Below, in pieces: positions 16,115-61,100 of a stretch of 64,000 nt of DNA (the first letter of the stretch is position 1; each line of letters begins with the position of its first letter). This DNA comes from Octopus sinensis (lineage: Eukaryota). The notes below the pieces were generated by a model. The model searched no databases. It worked only from the letters and a program-made list of their open reading frames with translations, and was not told the DNA's origin. The position numbers and the translations under genes were made by a program. The stretch is taken from positions 138,942,001 through 139,006,000 of the forward strand of contig NC_042998.1 in NCBI RefSeq assembly GCF_006345805.1, read 5' to 3'.

Positions 16115-16254
16115 TAAATTAATAAGTTGATTAATATTAATACAAATGGAATTAATATGCCTTCTCAAGAAACATAGAAAATCAGAAGAAACATTTAAGC
16201 TAAACACTTGATCCAAAGACAAACTGTGAAGACACTTATAATAGTGCAAATTAC

Positions 16255-17089: not shown

Positions 17090-17129
<40 letters not shown>

Positions 17130-18481: not shown

Positions 18482-18519
<38 letters not shown>

Positions 18520-23300: not shown

Positions 23301-23413
23301 TAGATCATTTCATCTGCAATACCAGGCATGTCATTCAGTTTCCTGCCTTCAACATCATCTGCATACAAGCTTATATAAAGAAGATCATCTTTGAAGCTTT
23401 CTACATATGCCTC
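23301..23413 (-). CDS. DRC3: DRC3 coding exon 6 (EAYVESFKDDLLYISLYADDVEGRKLNDMPGIADEMI + TA)
   Basis: Acceptor TTTGCAG. Matches human TAFVEHLNGSFLFDSMYAEDSEGNNLSYLPGVGELLE. No GT donor precedes the in-frame TAA; the exon ends at the U12-type donor ATATCCAT (phase 2). Confidence 0.9.
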
Positions 23414-24056: not shown

Positions 24057-24093
<37 letters not shown>

Positions 24094-25694: not shown

Positions 25695-25760
<66 letters not shown>

Positions 25761-26521: not shown

Positions 26522-26588
<67 letters not shown>

Positions 26589-26613
26589 TTATCTACCTAT
26601 CTATCTATCTATC

Positions 26614-26644
<31 letters not shown>

Positions 26645-27395
26645 CTCTTTCTCTCTTTCTCTCTCTCACCATCTCTCTCTTTCTCTCTATCTATCTAGCT
26701 AGCTATCCACTCTCTATTTATCTGTCTACTTGTCTAACCCTGCACATATTGTTTGTTATTTCACATCTTGGTGCCGCTAGTCTTAGCAGAATAAAAATTC
26801 CAATGCATTTGTTATTGTTGTTGCTGCTCTGATAGTAGTGTTTACACTGGTTGAGACAGAGGTAGTTGTGTGATGTTTGGGTAGTGTTTATATTTTGTGA
26901 TGGCCAATGTCAGAGTAGTGATTGTGATATATCTTTTTATCTTTCACTTGTTTCAGTCATTAGACTGCAGTCATGCGGGAGCACTGCCTTGAAAATTTTT
27001 AGTCAAATGAAGTGATCTCAGTACTTATTTTTCCCTTTTTCGTTAAGCCTGGTACATATTCTATCAGTCACTTTGCTGAACTGTTAAATTATGGGGACAT
27101 AACCACACCAACATCAGTTGTCAAGCAATAGCACAAAGACACACACACAAACAAATATAGCACCATTTGAGAGTGGCTGTTGCCAGTACTGCCTGACTGG
27201 CCCTCGTACCGGTGGCATGTAAAAGCACCCACTACACTCTTGGAGTGGTTGGCATTAGGAAGGGCATCCAGCTGTAGAAACTCTGCCAGATCAGATTGGA
27301 GCCTGGTGCAGCCATCTGGTTTACCAGACCTCAGTCAAATCATCCAGCCCATGCTAGCATGGAAAGCGGATGTTAAACGATGATGATAATGATGA

Positions 27396-27935
27396 TGACA
27401 AGCTTCTTTCAATTTCTGTCTACCGAATCTTATCACAAGACTTTGGTCAGCCTGAGGCTATAGTAGAAGACATTTGCCCAAGGTGTCATGCAGTAGAACT
27501 GAACCCAGAACGATGTGGTTGGGAAGCAAGTTTCTTATCACACAGTCACAGCTGCACCTATATATCTATTCTTGTTTATCATGGGAGTTTGGTCTCAAAG
27601 AAGCACAGTGATAAATGAATCATCTTCATGTAGTTTGTAAAGGAAATGAATAGCAAATTCATTGACATGACAAGCTTCTTTCAGTTTCTGTCTACCAAAT
27701 CCAATCACAAGGCTTTGGTCAGCCTGAGGCTATAGTAGAAGACATTTACCTAAGGCATCACACAGTAGAACTGAACCCAGAACCATGTGGTTGGGAAACA
27801 AGTTTCTTACCACACAACCACAGCTGTGCCTATATATCCATTGTCGTTTATCATGAGGGTTTGGTCTCAAAAAAGCACAGTGATAAATGAATCATCTTCA
27901 TGCACTTTGTGAAGGAGACATATGGCAAATTCATT
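27396..27935. repeat. Two diverged tandem copies (~270-bp period) of a SINE head plus adjacent unique flank
   Basis: Units start TGACAAGCTTCTTTCA at ~27396 and ~27667; both continue through GGTCTCAAA..AGCACAGTGATAAATGAATCATCTTCATG. Confidence 0.8.
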
Positions 27936-30279
27936 GACACCAAACTGCAGCACACAGCAGTGAAGCTTCTATCATCACATATTTTCTTGATCATCTCTAC
28001 CTTTCCTTGTAAAAAAATCACTTGTCTGCATTAATTGTTAGGACCAGGTGCCTTTGTATTTTCACTTTTCATCGTTGATGGGTGCCAATATGTAATTCAT
28101 TATAAAAATCACACAGCCTTGCTGCACAGTCATGTAAACACAAGTAATAGTGAGTGCATTCTGGGTAGCTAAGGACTGTGGGTAATTGTTGGGGTGCGTT
28201 CTTGTGGTACATGCAGAATCTCCAATGGATTGCTGACTCATGTTACCACAGATCACACTATGATAAGCATAACATGTTTCCATGTTTCACAATTGAGTAT
28301 ATTCCTTGTTATCCCAAATCAGAGATGAACGAATTAGTGACAACTGCTGTTGGTTTATTTACATCCCCCATAACTTAGCAGTTTGGCCAAAAGCAAACAA
28401 CAGAACAAGTACTAGACTTAAAAGAGAAATACTGGGGACTAAATCCTTCAAGGTGGTATCCCAACATGGCTGCAATCCAATGAGTGAAACAAGTAAAACA
28501 TAGAAAAAATATGTCTCAAGATTTATGAAAGTCATCATCATTATTGTCATTGTCGTCATTGTTATTTAACATCTGTTTCCATGCTGGCATGGGTTGGATG
28601 GCTTGACAGGAACTGGCAAGACCAGGGGCACACCAGGTTCCATAGTTTGTTTTAACTTAGTTTCTACAGCCAGATGCTCTTCCTCATGCCAACCACTTTA
28701 CAGAGTGTATTGGGTGCTTTTTTATGTGGCATCAGCATCCACACCAACGTTTTTGTTTTGTTTTTTGCACAAAAGTACATAAAATGTATGTGCTGACTCA
28801 CTGAATATCAAGCAATAGGGTCTGTCATCTTTCAGTACCATCATTTTAGGTCAGTGATTCCTATAACAGACAATGCTGCACCCTGGTATGGAACAATGGG
28901 TTTCCTAAGTGGGTATCACAAGTAAAAGTATTCCTGAGGGGCAGGGTTATAGAACTTTAGGTTACTCAATATAAAATTTTCCACATTATTTTACTGCGTT
29001 TTTCTACTGAGTAAATTTTGAGAATCTCAAGGAAATGGAAACTCAAAAGCAAAAACCACAATTCCTGTGAAAGGAAATGCATTGATTTTGAAAAGATCCT
29101 TCTCTAAGAGAGAACACACTACAATTCTTGAATCATGTCATGAAATAAATGTAGGAATTGCAGCACCACAATCAGACTGTTGAGAATTTTACACCAAAGT
29201 TTGGTGAGATAGAAGTATCCCATTCTTATAATCAACAAAAAAGAAAAAGCTACTAAATTTGAACTATTTTTCTTTGATTTCCTTTAATTTTATATCATTT
29301 CATTTCACTTCTTTTAGTCAATTCTTCATTCTTTAAGAATAATCAATTTTATACTAATAATAGAAACCTTTCCATAGTTAAACCTGAGACACTAATTCTC
29401 TCTCATCTATAGCTGTTGAACTTTGACTTTTATAAGTCTCACATACACCCAGAAAACACACACACATGCACACACACACACACACACACATGCACACACA
29501 CACACACACATACACACACAATACTTTTTCTTCCTCTCAGATTTTTCAGATAGAAATTTGAGAATAAGATATCAATACTCAACAGAAAAGAAGAGAGAGT
29601 GAGGAGAGAGAGAGAAATAAGAAAACACCTTGGGAAACAATAACAACAACCACAATATTAAGCATTTCGGAAAAATAAATTCCAAAAGGGTTTCTTTTGC
29701 ATTCTAAAGTTGTTTGTTTTGTTTTTTTTGTTTGTTTTTTTTGTAATATAATAGTTGTAGGCAACTTCATACAGTAACAGCATACACCACCCGCTGGCTG
29801 TGATTCAGAGTTGTATGACAACTTCATTTTCTAATTGCAGCCAAGACACTTTTCTTGTGTTGTTAATGTCCTTGAGAAAAGCATGAAGACATAGACCTCT
29901 AAAAGAAACTAAAGGAAGTGGTGAGTAGTCGAGTACAGAGGTAAGACTCTAGCAAGGCTCCAAATCATGAACCAGTTTTGATTCCTTAATATCTGACCAA
30001 AATATTCTTTCTGTTTTATATTCAAACTGGACAGATCAGGCCTTCACACTAACCCTACAATATCATTCTAAAAATTAACAGTTATATCTTAAAAATCTGA
30101 AAGCCATAATATAAAGCATGATCAATTCAAAACAATGTGAGTGAATAAGCTTTACATTTGACAGAATAATCTGAATGCTAAAGGGTTAATTTAGGCATAG
30201 CTTTTCATTTTCAAAGCCACTGTATGTTAAGCAGCATCATTTTTGCTTTTCTTTTTTTCCCCTTCTAGTTCTAATTTAG

Positions 30280-30361
30280 GACATTGTGGACAAGTGGTTA
30301 AAGCAATGGACTAGAAATCTATTGGAGTTTTCTTGCTTAGGTTCGAAAACTTTGGTAATAG
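30280..30361 (+). pseudogene. Decayed tRNA-Ser(AGA)-derived sequence
   Basis: GTGGACAAGTGGTTAAAGCAATGGACTAGAAATCTATTGGAG...AGGTTCGAA: A box, anticodon arm with AGA (30313-30315), long variable arm, B box. Acceptor stem is broken. Confidence 0.7.
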
Positions 30362-30897
30362 ATAATTTATTTTTTAATGGTAGTGCCCCAGCATGGCTAC
30401 AGCTTCTGAAACCAATAATAGAATGATAGAAGAATGTCCACTGTCATGGAACTGATAGGTCATTACAATCTGAGTTTTTGTTTAAGCTGTGGCCCTCCTA
30501 AGTTTAGCTAGTGGGCCATACCTTTTTTGTCCATATTCATTCGACATGGTTTCATTCAACTTGATGTCCTTCCTAATGCCAACCACTTTATAAAGGGTAC
30601 TGGAATCATTTTTTCTGGCACCAGCTCTAGAGAGGTTGCCATACCTTCAACAAGGCAAAACTAAGAGTTCCCTTGGCTCTATGGTATCTCCATTAGTTCA
30701 TCTACCACTTCACAAATGGCACATGAAGCCCTCTATTGCAACACTAGTGCTTGTGAGGCTTCCTTGCCCAAGGATCCTCTTAAATCTAAATAGTCTTCAC
30801 CAATTCTGAGTAATGTGAGCCTTAGTGGGTAGAAGAAAGAATAAATGCAAAAAGGACCAGGATGAGATGCAGAGAAAGAGAAACAGATTGTGATTAC

Positions 30898-31017
30898 CAT
30901 ATCTTTCTTATATTCTTCTCTCATCAGTCGTTGTTCTTCCTCTTTCTGTTGGATTTTCATCTCAGACTCAACAAGTGCATCAAGAGATGTTTGCATTTTC
31001 CTGAGAGCATTTTCTCG
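30898..31017 (-). CDS. DRC3: DRC3 coding exon 5 (RENALRKMQTSLDALVESEMKIQQKEEEQRLMREEYKKDM), coiled coil
   Basis: Acceptor TTTTTTAG, donor GTAATC, 120 nt, phase 0/0. Position and coiled-coil character fit the human segment preceding TAFVEHL. Confidence 0.85.
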
Positions 31018-31758
31018 CTAAAAAATATGAGAAAAAAGTGGCTATGTGGTTAAGAAGTTCACATTGCAAATATGTGGTTTTAGGTTCTGTCTCATTGCAT
31101 GGCACCATGGGCAAGTGTCTACTACTGTAGATCCAAGACATGTGAGTGAATCTAGTAGATAGAAACTGTGTGGAAGTCTGTTGTGTGTGTGTGTCTTTTT
31201 TCTTCATCACCCACTGTTTGACAACTGGTGTTGGGTTGTTTGAATCCCCCCATAACTTAAAGTTTGGCAAAGGAAAAAAATACCACCAGAGTAAGTACCA
31301 GAAAAGAGAAGTACTGGGGTCAGTTTGTTTTATAAAACCCTTTCAAGGCAGTACCCCAGTATGGGCTGCATTCCAATTACTGAAACAACTAAAAAAAATA
31401 AAAGCTAAAAAGATGACTACTGAGATACAGCTTGTTATGAGTGGCAGCTATATGAGGGGAAAATTAACTACTTTGCAAAGACCTCTCTGCAAGCTTCATA
31501 GAATCATACCAAACTTCTTTGCCTCTCTCTTGACATCTCTCACAATCGGTAGCAGATGGAAAATATTTCCAGCTTTCTTAGCTAGGGATAGTGACATAGC
31601 TAAGGACAGTATATATTAACAACAGAGGCAGTATTAATACCAAGAGATAATATTTATTCCCACTTAAATATGACTGTTCTGTTAGAACAAACTTTATGAG
31701 CATTTCTCTTGTGTTACCTACTGCAGTGAAGTTTGTTCTAACAGAACATCCACATTAA

Positions 31759-32270
31759 CTGTAAATCCTCGAGTATAATCCGCATTTTTTTCCCAAAATT
31801 TAAAGGTCAAAATCCCTAGTGCGTACTATATATGAGGTTAAAAATGAAAAATATTTTCTAAGCAATGTCCAAGTCTCTATTTGCTGTCCAGCAATGTTTA
31901 TTCAGACACATTTTGTGATGTCGGGCGCGAAAATACCTTAAGCTAAGCCTGAAAGCAATGAAGTCATAAAAGAATCATCCATAATTTGCAGTAAGCAACA
32001 TATATTAAATGTTATTACTGTTATTTCTTTATTTTCTGCAAACAAAATGCACAAAAAAGCTACATGTTGGCATTATGTTATATATACAATAATAATAAAG
32101 GACGTTACCATATACATTTTTACAAACCAAGGACGTTATATGAACCTCCTTGACTCAAGTTAGAGAAGAGGTGCGTATTATACACAAGGTTTAGGTTTTT
32201 CAGAGGTACAGCCCCCTAAAAATCCCCTGCATATTATACTCAAGGGCGGACTATACTCGAGGATTTACGG
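31759..32270. mobile_element. pogo/Tc2-type MITE
   Basis: TIRs C(T/C)GTAAATCCTCGAGTATA / TATACTCGAGGATTTACGG; right end followed by TA. Confidence 0.8.
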
Positions 32271-32891
32271 TAAGTGGAAATAAATATTACCTCTAGCTAA
32301 AGAAAGATGCCAACAAACAGTGCACCATTGACAATTTTCAGCACATAACTCTGCAGAATGCAGAGTTTTAAGATTTTGGTCAAGGTGCTCATGAAGAGGT
32401 TGGTGCTTTTTGTTAGTAAGTTAGGTCAGTAGTGCACAGATAAAACTACTGTATGATTTCTGGCTATTCTATATTCACAAAGGGACTGGAAGAGTGATGA
32501 CATGATGTCACAACTGCAAGCAGACAGCCTCTTTCTTACGAGGGTCTGTGGTGAGGCAAGTCGTGTGCTGCAAGCAGTCATGGTGTAATAGTCCTTGTTG
32601 GCGAGGAATCGGCAGAGTCGACATGTGGTTATAACTGTGAGGTTTGGCTGGCTTTCCCATGATCCGACATTTGGAGTGATTGTCAACAGTTGCAACTCAA
32701 AGTAAGAGCAAACTTTACTTCATGCCTTACAAAAACACAATCACAAAAGGATGAAAGGCAAAGTTGACATTGGCAGCATTTGAACTCAAAACATAAAGAA
32801 CCAGAAGAAATGCCAAGTAATTTGTTCAACATGCTAACGCTTTTGTCAGTTCACTGCCTGTGTTGGTATATAATACTGATAATGAAGATGG

Positions 32892-32957
<66 letters not shown>

Positions 32958-32958
32958 A

Positions 32959-32991
<33 letters not shown>

Positions 32992-33456
32992 CGTTCAAGA
33001 ATTTGGACCTGGAGATCTCCATTTCCAACGACATCGAGGGCCACCTCCCAGTGGTGTCAGGTGTCAATGAAGAGCCCTCGACTACAACAAGACGACCAAA
33101 TTTTTTTTTCCAAGGTCTGGGGTCTCCAGCCCCTAAACCCTAGACCATGACCTAATCACCCTTACCTATCTTGTTGCTTAACAACAACAACAACAGCAGC
33201 AGCAGTAGTAGTAGTAGTAATAGTGGAGGTGGAAATGCTGATGATGACGATAGCCATGTGATGTAGTGTTAATAATAGTATTGTTAATAGTAGGTTTAAT
33301 AATGCATGTGGAGGAGAGAGGGACTAGGAATATATCGTTGTTGGTTCTGGCAGTAGTAATGACTGATGATGGTAGTGGTGGTGGTGGTGGTGGTTGTGGT
33401 GGTGGTGGTGGTGGTGGTAGTGGTAGTAGTGTTAAGATATAAGAAAGAATACTTAC

Positions 33457-33603
33457 AAATTCTTCCTTGACTAAGGCATAATCGACATACTCCACCCAGT
33501 TGAGATAAACAACAACTGTCGTTTTATAGTCTTCCATCTCACAGAAGGGATTACCAGCTAAGTTAATCATTTTTAGCTTTTTGAATTTTCGTAGATACAA
33601 GAT
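33457..33603 (-). CDS. DRC3: DRC3 coding exon 4 (ILYLRKFKKLKMINLAGNPFCEMEDYKTTVVVYLNWVEYVDYALVKEEF), last LRR and LRR cap
   Basis: Acceptor TTTTTTCAG, donor GTAAGT, 147 nt, phase 0/0. Matches human IIYLRRFKCLRTLSLSRNPISEAEDYK. Confidence 0.95.
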
Positions 33604-33839
33604 CTGAAAAAAGGTTAGACAATTAACATTTATTAGCATTGATAGATAATCCATGAGAAAGAATCACAACCATGTGGTCTTGGGTTCAATTTCACTACAA
33701 GGCACTCTGGACACATATCTTCTACTATAGCCCCAGGCCAACCAATGCCTTGTGAGTAGATTTGATTAGATGGAACCTAAAAGAAAACCAACACACACAC
33801 ACATACACATACACACATACACACACACACATATATATA

Positions 33840-33915
<76 letters not shown>

Positions 33916-34309
33916 GTATATATACTTTTATTGGTTTCAGTCATCTCACTGCAGCTTTCTGGGAATTTATCAAACAAATTGACTCAAAGGCCTATTTTTT
34001 AAGCCCAGTACTTATTCTACCAGTCTCTTTTGCTGAACTGCTAAGTTACAGGGATGTAAATATACTAACACTGGTTGTCAAGTGGTGATGGGGAGGACAA
34101 GCACAGACACAAAGATATATACATATATAGACAACGAGCTTCTTTCAGTTTCTGTCTACCAAATCCATTCATGAGGTTTTGGTCAGCCTGAGGCTATAGT
34201 GGAAGACATTTGCCTAAGGTGTCACACAGTGGGACTGAACCTGGAACCATGTGATTGAGAAACACGCTTCTTACCACACAGCCACACCTAAAAAATAGAT
34301 GGATTGTGG

Positions 34310-34392
34310 TTCACTACAGCTGTTTCAGACATGTTTTTTATTGATGGGCAGAAGTGTTGCATCACGCAAAAAAAGTGTTTTCATCAGGTAAA
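34310..34392 (-). ncRNA. Type I hammerhead ribozyme motif (intact core, partly decayed stem II) in DRC3 intron 3, sense strand
   Basis: TTTAC-CTGATGA-AAACAC...ATGTCT-GAAAC-AGCT-GTA^GTGAA. Stem I is 5 bp with one G-U; loop III is palindromic (ACAGCTGT). Confidence 0.65.
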
Positions 34393-35982
34393 TATTAGAA
34401 CTTCTCAAGAACAAGTACATAGTGCCAAATGATTCAGATCACCCAAATGTGGTCAGAGAGTGAAAAGCTCAAGTTAGTATCAAGTTAATAATGAGGAAAT
34501 CCTAAAAAGTAAAGGGATAAAGCAGGGTAAAGGTCCTTCCCAAGTTATACAGAATCATAGGGCTGGTTTCTTGGTTTCTCCAGTGTTTATATTCCTCACT
34601 GGATAGGATGTTGGTCGATTACAGGATTACTCATTTTTGCCAGCTGAGTGGACTGGAGCAATGTAAAATGAAGTGTTTTGTTCAAGAACACAACGCCTCA
34701 CCTGGTCCAAGAATTGAAACCACAATCTTACAATCATGAGTCCAACACCCTTAACCGCTAAGCCATACACCTCCATATTCATTAAAGAGCCTGGATCAGA
34801 AAGGGAAATAGATGAAGTATGAGGAAGTAAGTGGAGAGAGAAAGACCAAAACGAGGAGAGAGAAGAGAGCACATGATCTTGTTTGACCTCGTAAAGGGTT
34901 ATAAATAAAATTAATGTTGTTTCTAAATAGTTGATAGGGTCTTTATACTGATAAACAAGAGTAATCATTTAATATACATAATTACAGAATAGCTACTATT
35001 AGTTTCACACTTTTATGACACATTAAATTAATAGATTTATATAACATGCCATGTATCTTCTCCAAGCAATCTTTCAGGCTCAGTTCATCATATGTTAGAT
35101 ATATTTAAAACCAGGACACTGGACAATGAGAAAACATGAGAGAAGAGCCAGGAGAAAAAAAAATAATGCGAAGAAGGTTGATGCAAAAATGTGGAACAAA
35201 AAGAAAGAAAAGAAAAGTAAAAAAAAAACAAGATCTTCATCTGCTTTGATTGTAGAAATCATAATTAATGTAGTTTATGCAGAATCTGTGAGAGAGCAAC
35301 TCAATATGAAGCAGGCAGTATTCTCCAGTTATATTATTATGATGATGAAAATGATGATGATGAGGATGAAGAAGATGATGATGATAATGATGATGATAAT
35401 TATGATGACGACAAGAATGATGATGATGATGATAATGCCAATAACAATGATGACGATGATGATGATGATGATAATGATGACAATGATGATGATTTTGTTT
35501 ATTATATATGTAGTGAATATATGTAGTGAGAACTACGGGGACAAGTCTTGGTCTTGAAAAGTTAAAAACAGGATTTTTACAGTTTGATGTTGCAAGTAAC
35601 AAGAGAGACATCTAATTAGAAAGTGTTTTGTTGGCTCTCAGCGTTGATACTGCTCTGCAATATGACCAAAGATTAACATTGATTCAGTCACTATGACAAT
35701 AATGTCTTTGTAGTCATTGTCACTGATGTCATCATTATCATCATCATCATCATTACTATTATCATCACTGCCAACATCAATACCACAATCATCATCACCA
35801 CCACCACCACCACTATTACTATTATCATCACCTTTTAGCATGCATGTTCCATGCTGGCATAGAGTGGACAGTTTGGCACCTAGAAATGCATTGTGCTCCA
35901 ATGTCTGCTTTGGCATGGTTTCTGTGGGTGGATACACTTCATAACATTAGTTTCTTTACAGTAATAATAAATAATTGCGCCC

Positions 35983-36468
35983 TTTTAAAGCCTAGCCAGG
36001 CTCATGGGCCTGGTTTCCTGGTTTCAATGACATATGTGTTCCGCAGCTGGATGGAATGCCAGTCCATCGCAATGTTACTCATTTTTGCCAGCTGAGTGGA
36101 CTGGAGCAACGTGAAATGAAGTGTTTTGCTCAAGAACACAACGCGTCGCCCGGTCCAGGAATCTAAACCACAATCTTACGATCATGATGCTGACACCCTA
36201 GCCACTAAGCCACACGCCTCCTGTGTCCTTTTAAAGTCTAGCCAGGCTCATAGGCCCGGTTTCCCGGTTTCAATGATGTTATGTGTTCCCCAGCTGGACG
36301 GGATGCCAGTCCATCACAATGTTACTCATTTTTGCCAGCTGAGTGGACTGGAGCAACGTGAAATGAAGTGTTTTGCTCAAGAACACAACGCATCGCCCGG
36401 TCCAAGAATTGAAACCACAATCATATGATCATGATGCTGACACCCTAACCACTAAGCCACATGCCTCC
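35983..36468 (-). mobile_element. Two head-to-tail copies of a tRNA-derived SINE
   Basis: ~240-bp units at 35983-36220 and 36229-36468 with a tRNA-like head (GTGGCTTAGTGG...GATTCC). Further copies at ~34560-34775 and ~24095-24240. Confidence 0.8.
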
Positions 36469-36742
36469 ACTACTTTACAGTATTGGGCACTTTTTTTTTT
36501 GTGGAACCAGCTCTAATGAGATCATCATGCAGATCACAAGAATAAGGTTATCTTCAAATGGATGTTGTGGGGTGGGGTAGGCCAAAGTACAAAGGGAGGC
36601 AATTTTATACCTGGAGATCAGAAATGAAAGTATGAGAGGAAAGACCAGAACAGAATAGATTTTTAGCTGTAAAGGTATCACATGGCTACTCACAAGGAGT
36701 GAGCAGGGTGGAGCTTGAAAGAGAGAACATTCTCTTACTCAC

Positions 36743-36909
36743 CATTCGGAGATCATTAATATCATTATTTCCAAGTGAAAGAACTTCCAAGTCCATTAAA
36801 GTATCCATGTTTGCAATGGTTGATATTCTGTTATTATACAGAGAAAGATCAGTCAATTTTGTTAGGTTATCCAGCCCTTCAATTTCTTCAATATTGTTAA
36901 AGGACAAAT
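36743..36909 (-). CDS. DRC3: DRC3 coding exon 3 ([56 protein letters not shown])
   Basis: Acceptor AAATAG, donor GTGAGT, 167 nt, frame-consistent. LRRs match human [29 protein letters not shown]. Confidence 0.95.
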
Positions 36910-37599
36910 CTATTTAATAAAGAGAAAATGGTTAAATATTATTTGGTTTTCTCTTCCTCAACAAGAATGGTAACTAGTTACTCCACCACTATAACAATAA
37001 CAACAACAGAATCCTCTTAAAACAAAAGCACCCTGTATATTTTGCAAAGTGGTTGGCATTAGGATGGGCATCCAGCCCCATAGAAACTTCACTTAAACAA
37101 GCATCAGAGTCTGATGCTGTCAACTAGCTTGTCAGATTTGGTCAATCTGTACAACCCATGACAGCATAGAAAATAAACATTAAATGATGATGATGATGAC
37201 AATGACGACAACGATGACGGCAATGATGATGATGATGATCTATGCAATTCCATTTTACAAACATTTTACATTGTTATTTTAGTTTGGTATATCAACAAAT
37301 CAGTAGAAGTGGGTTTTTTTTCTATATTAAATTTGATATTAGAGTGAAGAAGAGGGGACACAGAACAGAGACTAATTAAACATGATAAATTCTCAACTGA
37401 AGAATCATCAGGTTATATTTTTGCCATTGAAGCCTTGCTATAGTCAATGCACTGAAATATTCTACCTCCGTTTACTCAAATGCAAAGAGCCAATAATTGT
37501 ATTTGATCAACTAAGTAAACTTATACAAATTAAATCAACCAAATCAATGAAGGAACCAAATTTCTTTTCACAAATTACTCACCAGCTTTGAGACTATGT

Positions 37600-38470
37600 T
37601 TTTGAATACTGAAACACACAACAGCATGCATTCTTCCAATTATGACATGGTGGTTGCTGATACAGTGATGATTAATCCTTTTATATCAACCTGTATGAGG
37701 CCACCCTTAATTCTGGGAAACTAACTTCCTGTTGAAAATTATCTCAATTAAAAACCATAATTAGGATAGCTATTGAATTTGAGAAGAGGTATGAAATAAG
37801 AGCTGATACAGATCTCTCCCCAAGGAGCATTGGTAAAGTCTATTTATCAGAAAAACCAAGTAAAACAATGGAGCAGTTCACTAAGAAGATAGTACTTGGA
37901 TACTTGACATGAAAAACATGAACCATAGAAGGGACTGATCGTGTCAAGAGCTTGCTGTGGGGTACAGACAAGTTTATGACATTCCTCTTTGAAGGCTTCC
38001 TCCAGACAATTCAAGAACAAGAGTTCCCCACAAAGTACCTACAGCATAAGAAGCAGAAAACATTAACAGGCAACAAATGTAAGCTGTGTAAGACCAAGAC
38101 TGTAGACATTAACCACATTATTGCCAACTATGAGAGAATGTCTTCCCATGAAGTATGATGCAGTGGCCAGAACAGTCTGGAACAGGATAATAAAGAAGAA
38201 AACATCTACAGACCTATTTGACTATTTTGAGGCTGGTAGATCAAAAGAATATTGGTGATACTTAAAAAATAAATCTGCCACCAAGTTAAAACACAACCAG
38301 CTAGATGTAGTTGCATGAAATCAGAAGGGAAAGGTAAGTTCTGCTCTGGAAATCAGCTGCTCTCAGGACACCAATGTGGTTAGAAAATTACAAGGAAAAG
38401 AGGAATCATTAATAAAGAGTTTGTAAATCCAGTACCCAAGATACACTTTCAGTTTCATACTTATTATTAT
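37600..38470 (+). mobile_element. RLE-type LINE 3' fragment, same family as 10500-11500
   Basis: FEGFLQTIQEQEFPTKYL and KCKLCKTKTVDINHIIAN zinc-finger motifs; decayed KHNQLDVV (PD motif). Confidence 0.7.
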
Positions 38471-39342
38471 TGAAACAGCAGGATACATACAAAACTATCT
38501 AGAGCAAAATATGGCTGAACTTGGGATCTTAGGGAGAGAATGCAAATCTTTAATTCATATTCAACAAATGAGCCGGTGGCATGTAAAAGGCACCATTCGA
38601 ATGTGATCGTTACCAGTGCTGCCTTACTGGCATGTGTAAAAACATTCGAGCGAGGTTGTTGCCAGTACCACCTGACTGGCCTCCATGCCAGTGGCATGTA
38701 AAAGCACCCACTACACTCTCGGAGTGGTTGGCGTTAGGAAGGGCATCCAGCTGTAGAAACTCTGTCAGATCAAGATTGGAGCCTGTTGCAGCCATTCTGG
38801 TTTGCCAGCCCTCAGTCAAGTCATCCAACCCATGCTAGCATGGAAAGTGGATGTTAAACGATGATGATCATGATCATGATATCAGGGACTATAAAAATCT
38901 GCAGGACCTTCTTCAGATTTAAATGATAATGGTTAAAATGAGATGATTTCCTTCACAACCTTACTGCCAAGTACTATAAAATTACTCTAAAATTAAAAAG
39001 AGAAAATGAAAGAGACCAAATGAATAAGCAGGCGGGTGGGTGAACAAACAAACAAATGAATGTACATACATGCATGCATGTATGTATGTATGTATGTATG
39101 TATGTATGCATGCATGCATGCATACATACATACATACATACTATGGGCTTCTTCTAGTTTACGTCTACCAAATCCACTCTTAAGGCTTTGGTCAGCTAAG
39201 AGCGCTCTAGCAGTATGGTTGGGAAGCAAGTCTCTTAATCTCACAACCATGCTGGCACCTTTAACTGAATGAATAAAAACTGCTGAGTGAATGTCAGTGG
39301 AATGGGGAAAAAGAATTTCAAATGTAAAAAAATACCTCTTAC

Positions 39343-39459
39343 CCAGCCACACAAGGTTTATAAGTTGATCCAATCCTTCTATTTTTTCAATGACATTATT
39401 ATCAAGTTGTAGTTTGGTCAGTTTAATGAAGCACCATAAGTTGTCAATCTTCAGAATAT
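39343..39459 (-). CDS. DRC3: DRC3 coding exon 2 (N-ILKIDNLWCFIKLTKLQLDNNVIEKIEGLDQLINLVWL), leucine-rich repeats
   Basis: Acceptor TTTGTCAG, donor GTAAGA, 117 nt. Phase 1 continues exon 1. SDS22-like LRR matching human NILRIDNLWQFENLRKLQLDNNIIEKIEGL. Confidence 0.95.
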
Positions 39460-40169
39460 CTGACAAATAGCATATATGCTGCATTTTAATTAACATTGAA
39501 AACAGTAAATTGTTAACAACATACTATTTCATTAACAACATATAAAATATGGGAACCAAACCAGCAGCAGTAGCAACAGCATTATTTTAATGTTCATACT
39601 TTTTCCATACTTGCATGAGTCAGACAGAATTTGTTGAGGCAGGTTTTTTATGGCCGGATGCCCTTCCTGTTGCCAATTCTCACCCGTTTCCAAAGAAATA
39701 TTTTCCCATGGCTGGATAAGTTTGCATGGGAGATTGAGAACAAAGGACACTGCTTGTATGATGGTGAGATTTGTTTACAATAATCATGTATCATCAAGGC
39801 AAGGACCATGGTAATGTTTACATTGTAGTTGTGTGATCATTGTGCATATAGAGTACATGTATTGCATACACCAGATTGTTATCATGAGCTTGAATTGTTG
39901 CACATGTTGTCTTGTCTTGAAATGATTTACTGTAAGCATCAAATTATTCACAGCCATGAAATTTTGTGATTTGTTGCATGCTTTGATTTTCTTTACTGAT
40001 CTGTGCTGCACCCATCCTGCCATTTTTTTTTTGCGAGGATAACAAACTATTTGTTTTTATTTACTTTAATTAAAAAACTTATTAATCATAATGACATTTT
40101 ACTTTATTAATCTTAATGACATTTTACTTTTCTTTTTCCTCTTTTTTCACGTATATCATTATCTCATGT

Positions 40170-53074: not shown

Positions 53075-53234
53075 TCTTGAAATCTAATCTGAGATGCAGA
53101 ACATAATCAAAATCAATGCCCTCTTTTTTAACAATTTCTCCAGCCTCATATTTTGGTCCTTGTTCTTCAACTGCTTGAAGTAACATACCTTCCTCAATAA
53201 CTGCTGGTTCAATGGAATCATAGAGGCGGCTCAT
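53075..53234 (-). CDS. DRC3: DRC3/LRRC48 coding exon 1 (MSRLYDSIEPAVIEEGMLLQAVEEQGPKYEAGEIVKKEGIDFDYVLHLRLDFK)
   Basis: Translation matches the DRC3 N-terminus (human MEPRVMDDDMLKLAVGDQGPQEEAGQLAKQEGILFKDVLSLQLDF). Acceptor TTTCTTAG lies 5 nt upstream of the ATG (exon starts at 53239). Donor GTAAGT at 53074, phase 1. Confidence 0.95.
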
Positions 53235-54576
53235 TGTATCTAAGAAATAAAAACATATTTTTTAAATGTCAAACAGCATAAATCTTATTATATAAGAAAT
53301 ATGACAGTAGTTAAGGTGCTAAAGGTAAGCAATGCAAAACAACTTACTGCAAATATTATATAGATGCCTTAAGTAAGGTCTTTGAAGCAGTCTGCAGAAA
53401 ACATAACTCTCTGTCACTTCCTTTTTTTCGGAAACATTATTTTTTTTTATAAGAACTGCATTTCACTGCAGAACTATCTAGCATTAATTGATGTAATGCA
53501 TATATATCAAATCCTCGACTTAGGTAAGTAGAGTAATCCCTTGCGATGTTAAAAGCAAGATTTAAACTCTCTGCCAATCTAGTGTCTTATAAAGAAGTTT
53601 TTTTTTTATCTGGATCACAAGACAAACACTCAGCACAGAATCAACAGTACAAATGCTGATCCAATGGACTGATGTTTCACAAACCATGCTCAGGGTGATT
53701 TTAACGTATTTATTTAGAGGGAAAAAACAAAATGCCAAATTGACCAAAATTGTGGACCTACTTAGAGTGGGACCATCAATTCATAAATTTTCTGTATTCA
53801 ATGCCCATTTTATTTATCATATAGAGTAGCATAACTAGAGTTTGTACAATTTGGATTGTCTTTGACTTTGGCTCCAACCCATGAAAAACACATGATAAAG
53901 ATTTCTAATTTAGGTACAAGGTGAACAGTTTTTAGGAGAGGGGTTTAGTTAATACCATCAACCCTAGTATTTGATAGGTACTATATTTTATCAACCTCAG
54001 AGGGATGAAATACAAAGGTGACTATGGCAGAATTTGAACTCAGAACATAAAGAAAAGAACTGGAACAAATGCTACAAGGTATTTTTTTCTGATATTCTTG
54101 TGATTCCTTTGCAGCAATAGTCATCAAAAGTGCCATTATCCCAAAAATGCCACTCACAGTGGGCCACATCCTTTAGCTTTCTATTATTATTAATAAATTT
54201 CACTTCAATGCAGATGATATCACTTTACCCCTTCCTTATCTTCCTACATACAAGCTTTGTACATGTGCAGCCTAGACACTTCATGTCAAACCTATCTCCA
54301 ATGGGTACACAATAAGCTGGTCTCCTTCACTACATATATCAAAAAAACAGTATTGAACCTTTTCCCTTCTAGTCTTGAAGAACAGACAATTAAACTCCTT
54401 AAAGAAGCAACGTATGCAATGTATTACAATTACAAGCAACCTTTCCAACATAGTAAACACTTTACCCTAAATACTAACCAGAAAGATGATTCAATTCTGA
54501 ACACCTTTTGAACCTCAATAATGCTCAAATAAGACTCTGCAACAGTTTTTTTATTTCCCCAAGTCATTGATACATA

Positions 54577-55842
54577 CCGTAAAAACTCATCTAATTTACA
54601 CACCTTTTTTTTTTGCAAAAATAAAGATAAACTTAAGGGGGTGCGTAAATTACATGAGTAGATCATTTCCAGAATTTTGTTTTGAAATTTTTTTTGTTGA
54701 AAAGAAATTTACAAAACAAACATTTGTATCGGAAATTGACTCACTTAATGTCAGAATAGGTTTTTACAGAATAAATAATGGCTTAAATATAACGAAGTTG
54801 ACTTTTATTTATGCTGGATGGTATAATGCTTACTTTTTCAATATAAATTTACTAAAACCATTAAATGGTTAACTACTCTTTGAAGTCTGATGTTCATGCT
54901 GTTAAACACGGTCTAGGCCATATTTTACATTGCTTGGGGTTTCTACCTATCACAATAAAGCACCATTGACATACATAGCAATATGAATATTCCTGACTGA
55001 AAAAAATGTAATGATATGGATAATCTTGATTGTATGTTTTTATTTTTGTGTTTATTACTAGGCACAGTTTGTCGTATTGTTTATACAAATTTCAAACATT
55101 GGCTTCATTAACATTAAAATGCCTTCTGCTAGCTCTATTGCCACATTCAAATGCATATTCAACATATTTAAATTCTCCTTTGCAATAAGCAATTCATAAG
55201 TTCTGCCCATACTGACAATAATGGTAATGACAAATTTTTTAATTTGCTTGACATTTTATAAGTGTGAAAGGGAATAAAATTTTGATACTCCGTATCAAAG
55301 GTTCCAACAAGAATAGGCAGAAAAGAATTCTGTTTGCATAATCAGTTGCTTTCCTCTGCCAGTTGAGTAAAGTGTCATCTAAGCTGGTGTTTATTGGTAG
55401 TTAAAATTAATTTGCAACTCCTGTGCATATTTATCAGCTTTGTTTTTGTTGATAATTCTTATCAACAACTTTTCCTGTGATCATGATTTGAGAAGACATA
55501 CAGCAGTATGCTAAAGATCAGACAATCGCTTGTGGGCAAGAAATGAAAAATAAAGTTCATTATAAACAACACAAACACTTAATAATTTAACAGTTTTCAA
55601 TATGATACCTGTTAAACAGAAATTATTTTTATTCAATGAAAGTTTAATAAAATCTAATCATAAGTAAGTGAAATTATACTAAATACAACTAAATTGAAAA
55701 CATTCTTCTCCTGGCCATATTGGCAATTCTGAAAACATTTTGGTGTGAATTTTAGATGAGTAGAAGCTTTTTTTAACAAATTTTATTCTGAAAATTACCA
55801 GCGTAAATTACACATGTGTGCAAATTACATGGGTTTTTACGG
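54577..55842 (-). mobile_element. pogo-family DNA transposon, internally deleted
   Basis: TIRs CCGTAAAAAC.CAT.TAATTT / AAATTACATGGGTTTTTACGG with TA on both sides. Decayed brinker-type HTH (YVEYAFECGNRASRRHFNVNEANV) at ~55070-55190. Confidence 0.8.
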
Positions 55843-55904
55843 TATATAAAACTACAAAAAGGGAAAACTGAAATGAAAGGAAATATTTCAATTCAGCTTT
55901 TCAG

Positions 55905-55944
<40 letters not shown>

Positions 55945-55948
<4 letters not shown>

Positions 55949-56569
55949 AACTGTGATTGCATCAGCCAAAATGCTTTTATGTTCTGGTTCAAATTCCACT
56001 GAAGTCAACTTTGCCTTTCATTCTTTCAGGGTCAATAAAATAAGTACCAGTTGAGCACTGAGGTCAATGTAATTGACTAGCCTCCTACCCACAGACATGT
56101 CAGGCCTTGTGCCTACAATAGAAAGGATTTAAAGATAGTGAGCTGACAGAATGGTTAGTATGTCAGCCAAAATTCTTAGCAGCATTTCATCCATCTTTAT
56201 ATTCAAATTCTGCAAAGGTCAACTTTGTCTTTCATCCTTTTGGGGTTGATGAAATAAGTATCAGTTGAACACTGGTGTTGATATAATTGATTAGGCATCT
56301 TACCTGAAATGTCAGGCCTTGTGCTTATAGAAGAGAAGAAACAAATATTATTATTAAGACGGAAAGCTGGCAGAATCATTAGCACACCGGTTGAAATGCT
56401 TAGTGGTATTTCACCTGTTGCAATATTCTGGTTTCAAACTCCGCTGAGGTCAACTTTGTCTTTCATCCTTTCAGGCTTGATAAATCAAGTAACAGCGAAA
56501 CACTGAGGTCGATGAAATCCACTAGTCCCCTACCCACAAATTTCAGGCCTTGTTCTTATAGTAGAAAGG

Positions 56570-56617
<48 letters not shown>

Positions 56618-57470
56618 ATTATTATTATTATAGGTGCAGGAATGGCTGTGTGGAAAGTAGCTTGCTTACCAACCACATGGTTCTGGGTTCAGTCCCACTG
56701 CATGGCACCTTGGGCAGGTGTCTTCTACTATAACCTCGGGCCGACCAAGGCCTTGTGAGTGGATTTGGTAGACGGAAACTGAAAGAAGCACGTCATATAT
56801 ATGTATATATATAGATCCATTGGGCTTCAGCCACACGTGTGTGTGTGTTTGTGTGTCTGTGTTTGTCCCCTCCAACATCGCTTGACAACCGATGCTGGTG
56901 TGTTTACGTCCCCGTAACTTAACGGTTCGACAAAACAGACCGATAGAATAAGTACTAGGCTTACAAAGAATAAGCCCTGGGGTCGATTTGCTCGACTAAA
57001 GGCGGTGCTCCAGCATGGCCGCAGTCAAATGACTGAAACAAGTAAAAGTAAAAGAAGATTATTATTTGTTACTACACCAAACAAAATGCTTAGCAGCATT
57101 TCTTCTACCTTTACATCCTGAGTTCAAATTCTGCCGAGGTCGACTTCGCCTTCTTTGGGATCAATAGAATAGCGTACCTGCCAAGTACTGGAGTCAGTGT
57201 AATTAACTGGATCCCTCCCGCAAAAGTTCAGGCCTTGTGCCTATAGTAAAAAGGATTATTATTATTATTCAGAAACATTACCACACTGAACAAAATGCTT
57301 AGCGTCATTTCATCCAGCTTTACGTTCTAAGTTCAAGTTCCGCGAGGTCGACTTTGTCTTTCATCCTTTTGGGATCGATGAAATAAATAACAGTTGAACA
57401 CTGAGTTGATATAATCGACTAACCCCCTACCTCAAAAATTCAGGTTTTGTGTCTATAGTAGAAAGAATTA
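55945..57470 (+). mobile_element. Head-to-tail cluster of five Nin/Deu-core SINE copies plus one OR-like SINE, separated by (ATT)n
   Basis: Repeated core GAGGTCAACTTTG(C/T)CTTTCATCCTTT.GGGGT.GATAAAATAAGTACCAG at ~55995, 56215, 56445, 57135 and 57345, with tail CAGGCCTTGTGCCTATAGTAGAAAGGATT. Confidence 0.8.
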
Positions 57471-57763
57471 TTTGTCCACATTTTTCACAATAATATACTA
57501 GTTTTTCAAAACATACACGTTTAATTATATTGTGTGTTATTTATGACATTATTTATATATATATATATAATGAAAACTATTTGAAATAAATTATAAAATG
57601 AAAAGATGTTCTGAAAGAGTTTATCGAGGTTTTAACTACATAACAACAATGAACGACAGAAAATGCCATTATTTACATAGCACGTGTTTTAAAATAGAAA
57701 TGACAAACCATATTTGATAGCGGAATATTTATATTCGTGTAGGTGTTTGCTAGTAAGACTTAC

Positions 57764-57860
57764 TGCTGATATTTCGGGCTTATTTTAATTCAGAATCGAG
57801 CTTTTCTATACAAATTTTGATGATGCTATTCACTTTTCTCGGTGATTTCACCGCGTCCAG
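57764..57860 (-). other. DRC3: Probable non-coding first exon (5'UTR) of DRC3; upstream end approximate
   Basis: Coding exon 1 starts with an acceptor, so an upstream exon is required. Strong minus-strand donor CA|GTAAGT at 57763, in a CpG-retaining island just downstream of an X-box. Confidence 0.55.
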
Positions 57861-57862
57861 CT

Positions 57863-57876
57863 GTTGTCAAGGTTAC
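57863..57876. promoter_or_regulatory. RFX X-box (GTTGTCAAGGTTAC / GTAACCTTGACAAC)
   Basis: Minus-strand reading GTAACC-TT-GACAAC fits the X-box consensus RTHNYY-WT-RRNRAC. It sits at the presumed promoter of a motile-cilia gene. Confidence 0.7.
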
Positions 57877-58047
57877 GGGCATATCCGTAGAATATATTTA
57901 GGTTAAAATTTAATTCTGAATAGTTATTTTAAAATTTTATTTTCATAAACCATAATTTATTGTTTTAATTTTAAATAATAATAATTCGTATTTAATGATT
58001 TGTGAAGAAAATATACATTGCTAAAAATAAAAATCAGCAAAATTTAG

Positions 58048-58055
58048 TGACGTCA
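58048..58055. promoter_or_regulatory. Full palindromic CRE (TGACGTCA)
   Basis: Exact CREB/ATF consensus ending 23 nt before the TOM1L2 ATG, within the divergent promoter, in an otherwise CpG-depleted genome. Confidence 0.6.
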
Positions 58056-58078
58056 TTGTATGGAAGTCAAAAATCAAA

Positions 58079-58136
58079 ATGGCAGCTCTGTTTGGACACG
58101 GAAATCCTTTGAGTACTCCTGTCGGACAGTTAATCG
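58079..58136 (+). CDS. TOM1L2: TOM1/TOM1L2 orthologue, first coding exon (MAALFGHGNPLSTPVGQLI+G), start of VHS domain
   Basis: GNPLSTPVGQLI matches human TOM1L2 GNPFSTPVGQCLE and TOM1 GNPFSSPVGQRIE. Start context AAAATGG. Phase-1 donor G|GTAAAT at 58137. Exon 2 (KATDG...) not seen in the window. Confidence 0.88.
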
Positions 58137-61100
58137 GTAAATTTTCTTAAATTTTACAGGTCTTTTTCTATTATTCTTGTATTGACCTTAGTACGCACTT
58201 CAACTGCTTCAAAATAAGCCAATATGTCTTACTGACATGTTTTTTCATCGTTACTTTATTCAATTTCAATGCTAACGACATATAAGAATTTGTCCACAAA
58301 TTGGGGGATTTATTTTACTATAAAATTCTTATTATTAATGGTACCTGAGTTTATAATCATTTTTTTTTATTGAATCTGCCTACTTTCTCTGATTAATTCT
58401 GTCACGCACTAACAGATGGTTTTGGTTCTGCATTCTTGTATTTCACTATTATTATAATTATCATTACTAGTATTATTTCTTTATTGATACTCATACGTTG
58501 CAATTCATTAAATCAGAGCGATTTAATGTTGTTATATTCTAAAGCTATTTATTTACTTGTTTCTGATCACCGTAAAAAAATGGGTTAGCCTGCTTTTAAC
58601 TTTAATGACAATAACATGTCAGTTATATGGAATCTGCGCATTTTAAAGAGATACTTTCGACTTCTAAAGCTATACTGTGTATGTGATTTATTGTACTAAC
58701 CCACATATATAATTTCGATCATCAAATGATGAACCTTCGATCATATATTTGTACTTTGATTTCCTTGTTAAATTCTCGAAACATCTAATTCTAAATTCCA
58801 TCCGATCCTTTCAGTTGATATAAAAATGAAAAAAAAAAATTTTTTTGATAACGCATCGTAGTTATGCTCTCTTGTTAAACGTAGAACCTAAATCGCTTGT
58901 GGGAATTTTAGCATGCCTTCAAAAATGTAATTGGATAGTCTCAGTAAAAGAAGGCGATATTTGAGTATAACGTACCAGTTTCACTTTCCCAAACTTCAAC
59001 TGGTATCAGGTTTGTTTGACGGCCACGGAAGGGTTATTTTTTTCCTCTTTATTGATACTATGCTGTGGCCAGCTCGTTTATCTCAGGGGATATTGTAAGG
59101 TTTTGTTGTTTAAGATGGAAGGGTGTGATTATATCATTTCAGACTGTTTAATAGTTGTTGTTATTTCCATTTAGCTTTCAGTTTGTAAGAACTACTCCCC
59201 CTCAGTTATGTTTGCCGACCACTAGTTGTCATCGTTGTCTGTTTACTACTACAAGTACCTGACTGTAGACAGGCGGATTCTCCTTGGAAATTTCTCTGTG
59301 TTTCTCCATAGCTGTAGATAATGGTCCTATTATCATGCAGGACAGTTCTACATAAATACCGAACATATTTATACATTATACGCTATAACGCCATATTGAA
59401 TGGTTAAGTATTATTATACACTCCCCCTTTAAGGCTTCTGAAAAGACACACTCCATGTTTTGAACACATTGGTATGCTTTCTCAGAAAAGGGCTCTTAAG
59501 AAAAGAAAGGGTTTTGAGATATGTCAAACTAACTGCAAATTGACAAAATATCTTTAAGGTGTGGACGACTACCATTGACAACGCCGTTTACATCATAAAA
59601 CGGTTTCAATAAGAAAAGTATGTTTGTTTGTTTTCTGAGGGCACTTTTTATTGATACAGTTGTTTGATGCGATTTATTTTGGGGTTTATATGGTTATGAT
59701 TAAACGAAAATTACTGGGAAATGCACACTGCACAAGACCAGAACAATTATAGGCGGAGTTTTAGAATAGCATTCACTACATGTGGAAGGAAAAGGGCCAG
59801 GAATCGGGTATTTTCCCCACTTCGTTTTCTTTCTTTCTCCCTCTTTTTTTTTTTTTTTTTTTTTAGTATTCTTGTATTTCATATAACAGGAATTGTGATT
59901 GTGAAAGTATCTTTTTCAAAAATTTCAAATTTTTTTACATTTTTGCTCCCCAAATTCAATGCCCTTTTCCTTCGCCATGAGGTGGTCGTGATAGCTATTC
60001 CGAAACTCCGCCCAGTTTATAAACTGATTATGTTGTATAAGGGCATGTGTGTTGTTGGATTCAGAGCAGTCCGATTGTTATCGGTTGAATCAATCTAGAT
60101 AAGATGAATATCTTATGGTGAAAATAGACGAAATATAGTATTTCTACATAAGGTATATCAGAGGCCAGTGGAGGAGAGACCACCACTTGAAGTGTAACAT
60201 TGAAGGGCGATACATTGCTCGGAAATATTGTTCGTAGATCAAATTATACTCTGGAGATAGATGTTCGTATGATGGAAATATAATTATCAGTCCATGTATT
60301 TGACCACTATATTGTAAACCGCAATAAGGATTTCATAAATCCGGCTAATTGTCCTGCACACAAACAGAATGTTTAATGCGAAGAAAAATTGAATTAAATG
60401 TATTGGTACCTTTGATGAATAGTTACCTGAAAGAATTTAAGTGTAAGCGGCGCATATGAGCATGATGATGGCCAAAGCATTTGAAAATATTGTGACTGTT
60501 AATTCTGGAACATGATCCGTAGATTGTTTATTCATTTCATGAATTAGCTGTTCTGCAACATAAAATTACTTCGATTTACTGTAAATTACAGGGGTCGAGC
60601 ATTGACCGAAAAATTCCTTTCGTTTCTGTAAAAGTATTAATTGCCATAGTGATATTATTTTCATTTGTTTCTAATTCATATTGGTAAAGTATTATTGCGA
60701 AACTGGAACGAATGCTGAAGAAGATCGCTGAGACTAGATAGGAAAGTGGCATTTTGCGTGAATAATTTATCTGGTATTTTTACCTTTAAAAAAGAAGACA
60801 AAAACCAGTCAATTATTTACATATTATAGAACTCATAAACACAAAAAAATATCTTAACTATTTCTGTCGTTTTACCTTACATTGGAGCCTCTATGTGATT
60901 ACCTGACATGCTAAAAATAGCAACCGAGTTTCAGTACAAAAACAACAAAAATGAACAAGAACATGTCAATTCAAGACATTCTGATACAATCATACATTCC
61001 AACAATAACAATACAGTAAAAAAGAAAATTATGAATTGAACCAGTTTGTGCAATTCATTATTTTGTGCACAAAAAATGTGGTTTCCATAGAACACAGAAA

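Follow-up and report, generated by a model that had tools for sequence, protein, structure and literature searches.

A TOM1-family gene and DRC3 lie head to head in Octopus sinensis and other bilaterians, with a likely compact divergent promoter between them

We analyzed a 64 kb window (the whole stretch of 64,000 nucleotides) of the Octopus sinensis genome, in which DRC3 and a member of the TOM1 family of VHS-GAT ubiquitin adaptors are transcribed away from each other. DRC3, also known as LRRC48, contains leucine-rich repeats and is a subunit of the nexin-dynein regulatory complex in motile cilia. An earlier note on this DNA, made from its letters alone, had proposed that TOM1L2 and DRC3 form a head-to-head pair retained since the protostome-deuterostome split. 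Positions 1–63234 of the window match chromosome CM016860.1 of assembly GCA_006345805.1 at 100%, in reverse orientation, and coordinates were converted from the fetched, reverse-oriented chromosome locus as window x = 63235 minus locus position. Two genes are called by NCBI on the chromosome record: a DRC3-like gene on the minus strand (XP_029658548.1, 521 aa), whose coding range runs from 53234, and, on the plus strand, a gene for a 545-aa VHS+GAT product with its first coding base at 58079. A distance of 4,845 bp separates the two start codons. As set out below, the first exons of the two genes are back to back and belong to a deeply old linked pair. Human DRC3 and TOM1L2 probes served for exon location only, and the identifications rest on database proteins. 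Homology was searched with a 198-aa query, which returned only proteins of up to 345 aa and missed the octopus protein, then with a query carrying Solemya C-terminal sequence, and then with one padded with shuffled sequence.

On the plus strand, the ATG at 58079–58081 begins an exon of 19 codons plus one base (58136), and both the NCBI coding start and the encoded peptide bear out the start codon that the earlier note had placed here. The annotated O. sinensis TOM1 protein starts MAALFGHGNPLSTPVGQLIE and then enters the VHS domain. The N-terminus MAALFGHGNPLSTPVGQLIEKASDGS is common to O. sinensis "target of Myb protein 1 isoform X2", O. vulgaris TOM1, and an Argonauta TOM1-like protein, and is followed by VHS in each; the exon peptide is the exact N-terminus of these three proteins, which carry VHS and GAT domains downstream (PF00790 and PF03127 in the O. 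sinensis isoform X2). The note had made its case depend on this exon leading into a TOM1 VHS domain, and the annotated octopod proteins do continue that way. We counted as TOM1 family a protein with N-terminal VHS and GAT domains plus the conserved N-terminal motif GNPxSTPVGQ; the octopus protein has an N-terminal VHS followed by a GAT domain (Pfam), and only its exon 1 falls inside the window. A search for TOM1 exon 2 in 58137–64000 (5.9 kb) found none. A short exon 1 with the same phase and boundary is present in Solemya, Owenia, Branchiostoma, Labeo, and Manis, where its last codons read GQx(I/L/V), followed by the opening base of a split codon. A single TOM1-family gene is found in invertebrates, and its NCBI name varies between TOM1 and TOM1L2. 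The octopus gene is this single gene, co-orthologous to TOM1, TOM1L1, and TOM1L2; "TOM1-family gene, co-orthologue of TOM1L2" is therefore the more accurate label, and the earlier name TOM1L2 was right about the family but too specific about the member.

On the minus strand, we took as DRC3 a protein of ~520 aa that has the MSRLY motif at its N-terminus, contains an LRR_9/LRR_4 region and a coiled coil, and is orthologous to proteins named DRC3. Hits from across the animals carry the name DRC3, the lowest E-value being 1e-248. Exons in the window match XP_029658548.1 at 92–100% per exon in seven of eight cases, and at 75% in the last, where the alignment overruns its exon, which confirms the minus-strand gene as the DRC3 that had been suggested. 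C-terminal exons were sought below 16 kb in the window and none was found; the final third of the gene, with its last ~125 codons, lies past the window start, and the gene ends 17.8 kb before window position 1. The features of the locus are collected in Table 1.

Table 1. Coordinates of the features of the TOM1-family–DRC3 locus in the 64 kb window.
Feature	Position	Strand	Details
TOM1-family coding exon 1	58079..58136	+	MAALFGHGNPLSTPVGQLI plus first base of a split Glu codon; donor GTAAAT at 58137
Conserved non-coding block, start of TOM1 intron 1	58137..58422	+	Octopus-Argonauta alignment; invariant ATAAGAATTTGTCCACAAATTGGGGGAT and GCACTAACAGATGGTTT
Palindromic CRE/ATF site	58048..58055		TGACGTCA; 24 bp upstream of TOM1 ATG
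AT-rich spacer, CRE to X-box	57877..58047		Conserved among octopods (alignment)
Candidate RFX X-box	57863..57876	-	GTAACCTTGACAAC; DRC3 side; identical in O. bimaculoides and Argonauta
Putative DRC3 non-coding exon 1	57882..57764	-	3' end at 57834 (donor GTGAAT) or 57764 (donor GTAAGT)
DRC3 intron 1 (5'-UTR intron)	53240..57763	-	~4.5 kb; SINE-like repeats throughout; CpG-depleted like the gene body
DRC3 exon 2	53239..53075	-	ATG at 53234, begins MSRLYDSIEPAVIEEGMLLQ; NCBI coding start
Further DRC3 coding exons	16225..39463	-	tblastn of XP_029658548.1 against the window; approximate limits
DRC3 exon alignments (approximate)	39463-39341, 36913-36740, 33603-33457, 31017-30898	-	tblastn
DRC3 exon alignments (approximate)	23413-23303, 20698-20525, 16389-16225	-	tblastn

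Upon inspection of the 5' end of DRC3, we noted a splice acceptor, ttttatttcttag, which ends at 53240 with a textbook-like polypyrimidine tract and its AG 5 nt before the start codon. The same acceptor precedes the ATG by 5 nt in Argonauta, and in Octopus, Argonauta, Owenia, and Manis alike a strong acceptor lies 5–6 nt ahead of the DRC3 start codon. A strong acceptor in this position means that the transcript must start in an upstream non-coding exon; since the start codon is at 53234, any DRC3 exon at 57.8 kb is itself non-coding. Comparison between species, an O. vulgaris gene model, and the CpG profile together point to a putative exon 1 at ~57882–57764, 197–315 bp from the TOM1 ATG. Part of this evidence comes from the O. 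vulgaris DRC3 model CAI9717620.1, which begins MPVTLTTAGRGEITEK-NT-MSRLYD. Residues 1–16 are encoded by window positions 57882–57835 on the minus strand, and the "NT" of the model is the product of joining base 57834 to the exon starting at 53239. The O. vulgaris annotation drew on transcript assemblies from Iso-Seq and RNA-seq together with TransDecoder, ab initio predictors, and EVM (PMC10700109), and the junction between exons 1 and 2 is therefore probably transcript-derived. The 18-residue N-terminal extension of this model is partly encoded by the X-box described below and is absent from the O. sinensis, O. bimaculoides, and Argonauta models; it is probably an upstream ATG called in the 5' untranslated region (5' UTR) and not true protein sequence.

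The donor used by the O. vulgaris model is GTGAAT at 57833, which Argonauta does not have. A second minus-strand donor, GTAAGT, occupies 57763–57758, leaving 57764 as the last exon base, 315 bp from the TOM1 ATG; it is conserved in Argonauta, ~90–100 nt past the perfectly conserved GTAACCTTGACAAC. The donor that the earlier note had picked for the DRC3 first exon thus exists at the predicted distance and is conserved, although it shares the claim with the rival at 57833, and both donors may be used. Candidate non-coding first exons, with donors just past the X-box, were also noted in Owenia, pangolin, amphioxus, and Solemya (which has a GTTGCC half-site only). The Argonauta counterpart of DRC3 intron 1 is only ~1.1 kb long, against 4.5 kb in Octopus, where at least five copies of a short interspersed element (SINE)-like repeat lie at 55988–57472. 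This 5'-UTR intron is old and was enlarged in Octopus by SINE-like elements.

Next, we investigated the interval between the two first exons, which contains two candidate regulatory motifs. On the TOM1 side lies a palindromic cAMP response element/activating transcription factor (CRE/ATF) site, TGACGTCA, which is the sole copy in the window. A full CRE is also found 10 bp upstream of the TOM1 ATG in Solemya, 32 bp upstream in Owenia, and 47 bp upstream in amphioxus, such that all four invertebrate lineages have one within 60 bp of the ATG, for an empirical background per locus (60-bp window) of 0.0006–0.005. On the DRC3 side lies a candidate RFX X-box. The octopus element fits GTHNYY-NN-RRNAAC, a form of the C. 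elegans-type X-box consensus in which NN takes the place of the AT spacer. Its sequence is the same in all three octopods, where the distance from the X-box-like element to the TOM1 ATG is 203–215 bp, and elements at a comparable offset are present in Owenia (GTTACCACAGCAAC, 190 bp from the TOM1 ATG), which matches the strictest published consensus, and in Branchiostoma (GTTGCTAGACAAC, 219 bp), which matches a restricted consensus form. An X-box lies 130–280 bp from the TOM1 ATG in four of six lineages, compared to a background of 0.02–0.07, and the spacing between CRE and X-box is held at 158–191 bp across octopods, the annelid, and amphioxus, that is, across three phyla. X-boxes mark the promoters of ciliary genes (PMC2375033). 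We also noted a YY1-like GCGCCAT(A/T)TTG, 3–4 nt after the X-box, in Owenia (locus 7645–7675) and Branchiostoma (locus 9424–9450); octopus has no equivalent at the same place.

The interval is also the best conserved part of the locus. When the Octopus and Argonauta loci were aligned, the top alignment in both was the block at window positions 57834–58422 (609 bp, 78% identity, 478 bits), which outscores every exon, the DRC3 ATG exon scoring 172 bits in the same comparison. By this alignment, the whole TOM1–DRC3 interval is constrained within octopods. The block extends over the first ~290 bp of TOM1 intron 1, where GCACTAACAGATGGTTT holds an E-box, CAGATG; this conserved start of the intron may act as an intronic enhancer close to the promoter or as a downstream promoter element. 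The CpG observed/expected ratio reaches ~1.0–1.1 solely at 57–59 kb of the window and is 0.05–0.4 over the DRC3 body at 14–56 kb, the pattern expected for an unmethylated promoter beside a methylated transcription unit. Over 1–14 kb, still within a DRC3 intron, the ratio is 0.4–0.9, possibly because of younger repeat insertions.

To follow the pair across animals, we fetched DRC3 orthologue loci from public assemblies and read the neighbouring genes at eight bilaterian loci and in Nematostella and Trichoplax. A VHS or VHS+GAT gene stands head to head with DRC3 at all eight bilaterian loci: O. sinensis, O. bimaculoides (~5.2 kb from ATG to ATG), Argonauta hians (1,450 bp), the bivalve Solemya velum (~2.6 kb), the annelid Owenia fusiformis (~2.5 kb), the amphioxus Branchiostoma lanceolatum (795 bp), the pangolin Manis javanica (~4.3 kb, with a VHS+GAT gene), and the teleost Labeo rohita, where TOM1L2 exon 1, MEFLLGNPYSTPVGQCI, is uncalled but present on the opposite strand, 856 bp upstream. 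Gene calls alone had made the pair appear to be missing in Labeo, a reading we rejected on finding this exon at fetched-locus positions 9095–9145 (minus), where the annotation has no gene. Consistent with the pangolin locus, the mouse gene order is Srebf1, Tom1l2, Lrrc48, Atpaf2 (PMC2990707), and the mammalian head-to-head arrangement that the earlier note had given for human is thereby corroborated. At the Nematostella DRC3 locus, by contrast, the head-to-head neighbour is a PDZ+Arfaptin gene and the pair is absent, and in Trichoplax sp. H2 no TOM1 exon was detectable within ~9 kb of DRC3. Since the two genes are head to head in all eight bilaterian loci, retention since the protostome-deuterostome ancestor is the parsimonious explanation, in agreement with the note, which had also called for such a survey across bilaterians and cnidarians. 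Read from gene order, the pair is at least bilaterian in age; an older origin with later loss may also account for the distribution, two non-bilaterians having been sampled.

Two further species were set aside. Batillaria attramentaria proved uninformative as a synteny test: its fetched locus (6812–15911) contains three tandem, near-intronless DRC3-like genes (520, 237, and 521 aa) with the look of a retrocopy array, unlike the intron-rich DRC3 of other molluscs. An Exaiptasia protein came without a gene record and was left outside the synteny count. On the other flank of DRC3, an ATP12/ATPAF2 gene lies tail to tail after DRC3 in Trichoplax sp. H2 (fetched locus 10001–16460), as in mouse Lrrc48–Atpaf2, and a Vac_ImportDeg (GID4-like) gene comes after DRC3 in Labeo (fetched locus 10001–23179). 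The part of the human 17p11.2 gene order downstream of DRC3 is also old. Octopods have a Glyco_transf_11 gene downstream of DRC3, compared to ATPAF2 in vertebrates.

Several side observations concern the repeats of the locus. The SINE-like family (~210–230 bp) is represented by at least 12 copies in the window, diverged to 67–84% identity; five of them are clustered in DRC3 intron 1, and others lie at ~13.0, 19.8, 21.9, 32.8, 47.0, 52.7, and 54.0 kb. Two adjacent open reading frames at 43745–44486 (+) match RVT_1 (Pfam, E 4e-8 and 1e-9) and represent a decayed retroelement in a DRC3 intron. The long open reading frames at 4628–5221, 8589–9231, and 40439–41742 gave no significant Pfam match. 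DRC3 introns also carry long AAT/ATT-type trinucleotide and TG/CA and TA dinucleotide microsatellites, e.g. at 15296–15727. Rfam and tRNA (ARAGORN) scans of 52.5–60 kb detected no non-coding RNA and no intact tRNA.

Collectively, exon positions, motifs, and conservation suggest a bidirectional promoter. The stretch between the two genes is their shared 5' region and is likely a compact divergent promoter with two halves and of bilaterian age, a reading to which we assign a probability of about 0.8. A CRE-bearing TOM1 core and an X-box-bearing DRC3 core would lie together in one unmethylated stretch. The CRE/ATF site would support broad expression of TOM1, and the RFX X-box, ~180 bp away, would direct expression of DRC3 in ciliated cells. 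Transcription of DRC3 would begin at or near the X-box, and the resulting short non-coding exon would be spliced over the 4.5-kb intron to the acceptor at 53240. The X-box may also raise TOM1 expression in ciliated cells. The pair was probably kept because a break in so tiny an interval would strip promoter elements from one gene. Transcription start sites, the choice of DRC3 donor, transcription-factor binding, and co-regulation are, in this scheme, predictions from sequence.

The pairing had been described in the earlier note as one of a housekeeping endosomal adaptor with a motile-cilia gene. The second half of that description holds, but TOM1L2 is also the adaptor by which the BBSome recognizes K63-ubiquitinated cargo for exit from cilia, and ubiquitin builds up in the cilia of Chlamydomonas tom1 mutants (bioRxiv 10.1101/2022.09.23.509287). 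Given this ciliary-exit role, the pairing of TOM1 with DRC3 may be functionally coherent and not odd, and a shared RFX input is a reasonable hypothetical reason for the linkage. Taken to its limit, the argument would make the CRE, the ~170 bp that follow, and the X-box one regulatory unit more than 550 million years old, with an X-box that acts in both directions and gives TOM1 a ciliary boost; TOM1 would need an RFX input for its ciliary role, only the DRC3 promoter could supply it, and the linkage would be kept for that reason. We consider this strong form unlikely.

Several observations weigh against a shared promoter with two conserved halves. Solemya has only a GTTGCC half-site, 194 bp from the TOM1 ATG, and the fish and pangolin loci have no CRE and carry X-boxes ~585–595 bp from the TOM1L2 ATG (GTTGCTAAGCAAC in Labeo and GTTGCTAGGGAAC in Manis), which adjoin the DRC3 first exon; the TOM1L2 side in pangolin has multiple CCAAT boxes within GC-rich sequence. 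X-box-like matches are not enriched in the window (4 observed, 6.45 expected), and the octopus element is one base off the strictest consensus, RTNRCC N1-3 RGYAAC, and falls outside GYTRYY N1-3 RRHRAC (both PMC2375033), hence it is position and conservation that give the element weight. The windows for the motif search were picked after the octopus pattern was known. Two donors, 57833 and 57763, compete for DRC3 exon 1, whose support consists of gene models and conservation; octopus DRC3 transcript contigs were sought among cluster members and none was found. In mouse, cells of the osteoblast lineage express Tom1l2 but not Lrrc48 (PMC5527106), hence simple co-expression of the two sides does not hold in mammals. 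Lastly, a very small intergenic target could be retained passively.

Some of these observations fit another account, in which the adjacency is ancestral but neutral: the interval would be too short to offer breakpoints, and the CRE and X-box would be independent, gene-specific elements. The osteoblast data, the CCAAT/GC-type elements and wider spacing that replace the CRE arrangement in vertebrates, and the Nematostella and Trichoplax loci without the pair are all compatible with it. Nevertheless, the pair was kept at every bilaterian locus examined, including octopods, in which the other neighbour of DRC3 is Glyco_transf_11 and not, as in vertebrates, ATPAF2; the CRE-to-X-box spacing was held across three phyla; the Octopus-Argonauta spacer is more conserved than coding exons; and signs of regulatory constraint are seen in 5'-5' conserved pairs as a class (PMC3514665). 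We therefore regard neutral adjacency as somewhat unlikely. A different objection is that the genes are neighbours without a shared promoter, DRC3 starting near 53.3 kb, 4.8 kb from TOM1, and the "exon" at 57.8 kb arising from upstream antisense transcription at the TOM1 promoter or from an error of annotation. Indeed, the NCBI O. sinensis DRC3 model gives a coding range only, from 53234, and the O. vulgaris extension, MPVTLTTAGRGEITEKNT, lacks a counterpart in the Argonauta and O. sinensis proteins, overlaps the X-box, and is possibly an open-reading-frame extension made by a predictor. A start near 53.3 kb is, however, hard to reconcile with the polypyrimidine tract and AG directly before the ATG there and in Argonauta, Owenia, and pangolin, with an Octopus-Argonauta similarity upstream of the ATG that ends ~19 nt after the acceptor, or with a gene-body-like CpG ratio of 0.18 at 53–54 kb. 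Moreover, the conserved X-box, expected at the promoter of a motile-cilia gene, sits at 57863–57876 and not near 53.3 kb. This objection is very improbable in our view, and the shared, two-sided 5' region remains the reading that we favour.

Known systems provide a frame for this reading. Nearly 600 conserved ancestral microsyntenic pairs (CAMPs) have been described, enriched for 5'-5' orientation and short intergenic distance, and bidirectional promoters have been put forward as one of the causes (Irimia et al. 2012, PMC3514665). TOM1 and DRC3 are non-paralogous, adjacent without an intervening gene, and divergent 5'-5' in all eight loci, as CAMPs are. With examples such as HSPD1–HSPE1 they share unrelated divergent neighbours, conserved orientation, and a short conserved intergenic sequence. 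HSPD1 and HSPE1, however, are co-expressed partners of one complex, whereas TOM1 and DRC3 differ in expression breadth and have no known physical interaction; TOM1–DRC3 was also not found in the two non-bilaterians sampled. Compared to mammalian bidirectional promoters, with start sites less than 1 kb apart (Adachi and Lieber 2002, via PMC3514665), the locus is alike in its divergent first exons a few hundred base pairs apart and in a shared region that is not CpG-depleted in octopus and is GC-rich with CCAAT boxes in pangolin. It differs in that the octopus region is AT-rich (30% G+C) with a CRE and X-box, while the mammalian type is a CpG island with NF-Y, SP1, or GABP sites. As in X-box/RFX ciliary promoters (PMC2375033; PMC10530576), an imperfect palindromic X-box lies near the first exon of a motile-cilia gene at a conserved position; the octopus candidate departs from them in its one-base mismatch to the strictest consensus and in its place in a promoter probably shared with a broadly expressed gene. 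No discussion of the conservation of the TOM1L2–DRC3 pair was found in the literature searched. TOM1–DRC3 thus fits the known CAMP class, as a new or at least undiscussed pair and not a new kind of system; motif-level conservation over three phyla is its most notable part, and the ciliary link its most testable.

Two unrelated genes that stay paired over deep time provide a rare natural experiment on the retention of gene order, and TOM1–DRC3 is an unusually clean one: both first exons and the position of the 5'-UTR intron are conserved from octopus to mammal, the interval is a few hundred bases, and the pair survives in the heavily rearranged, transposon-swollen octopus genome. In practical terms, the finding places the likely DRC3 promoter of cephalopods and exposes the uncalled first exon of Labeo TOM1L2. 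It also offers a testable idea, that an RFX site in the promoter of a motile-cilia gene may serve the neighbouring gene as well.

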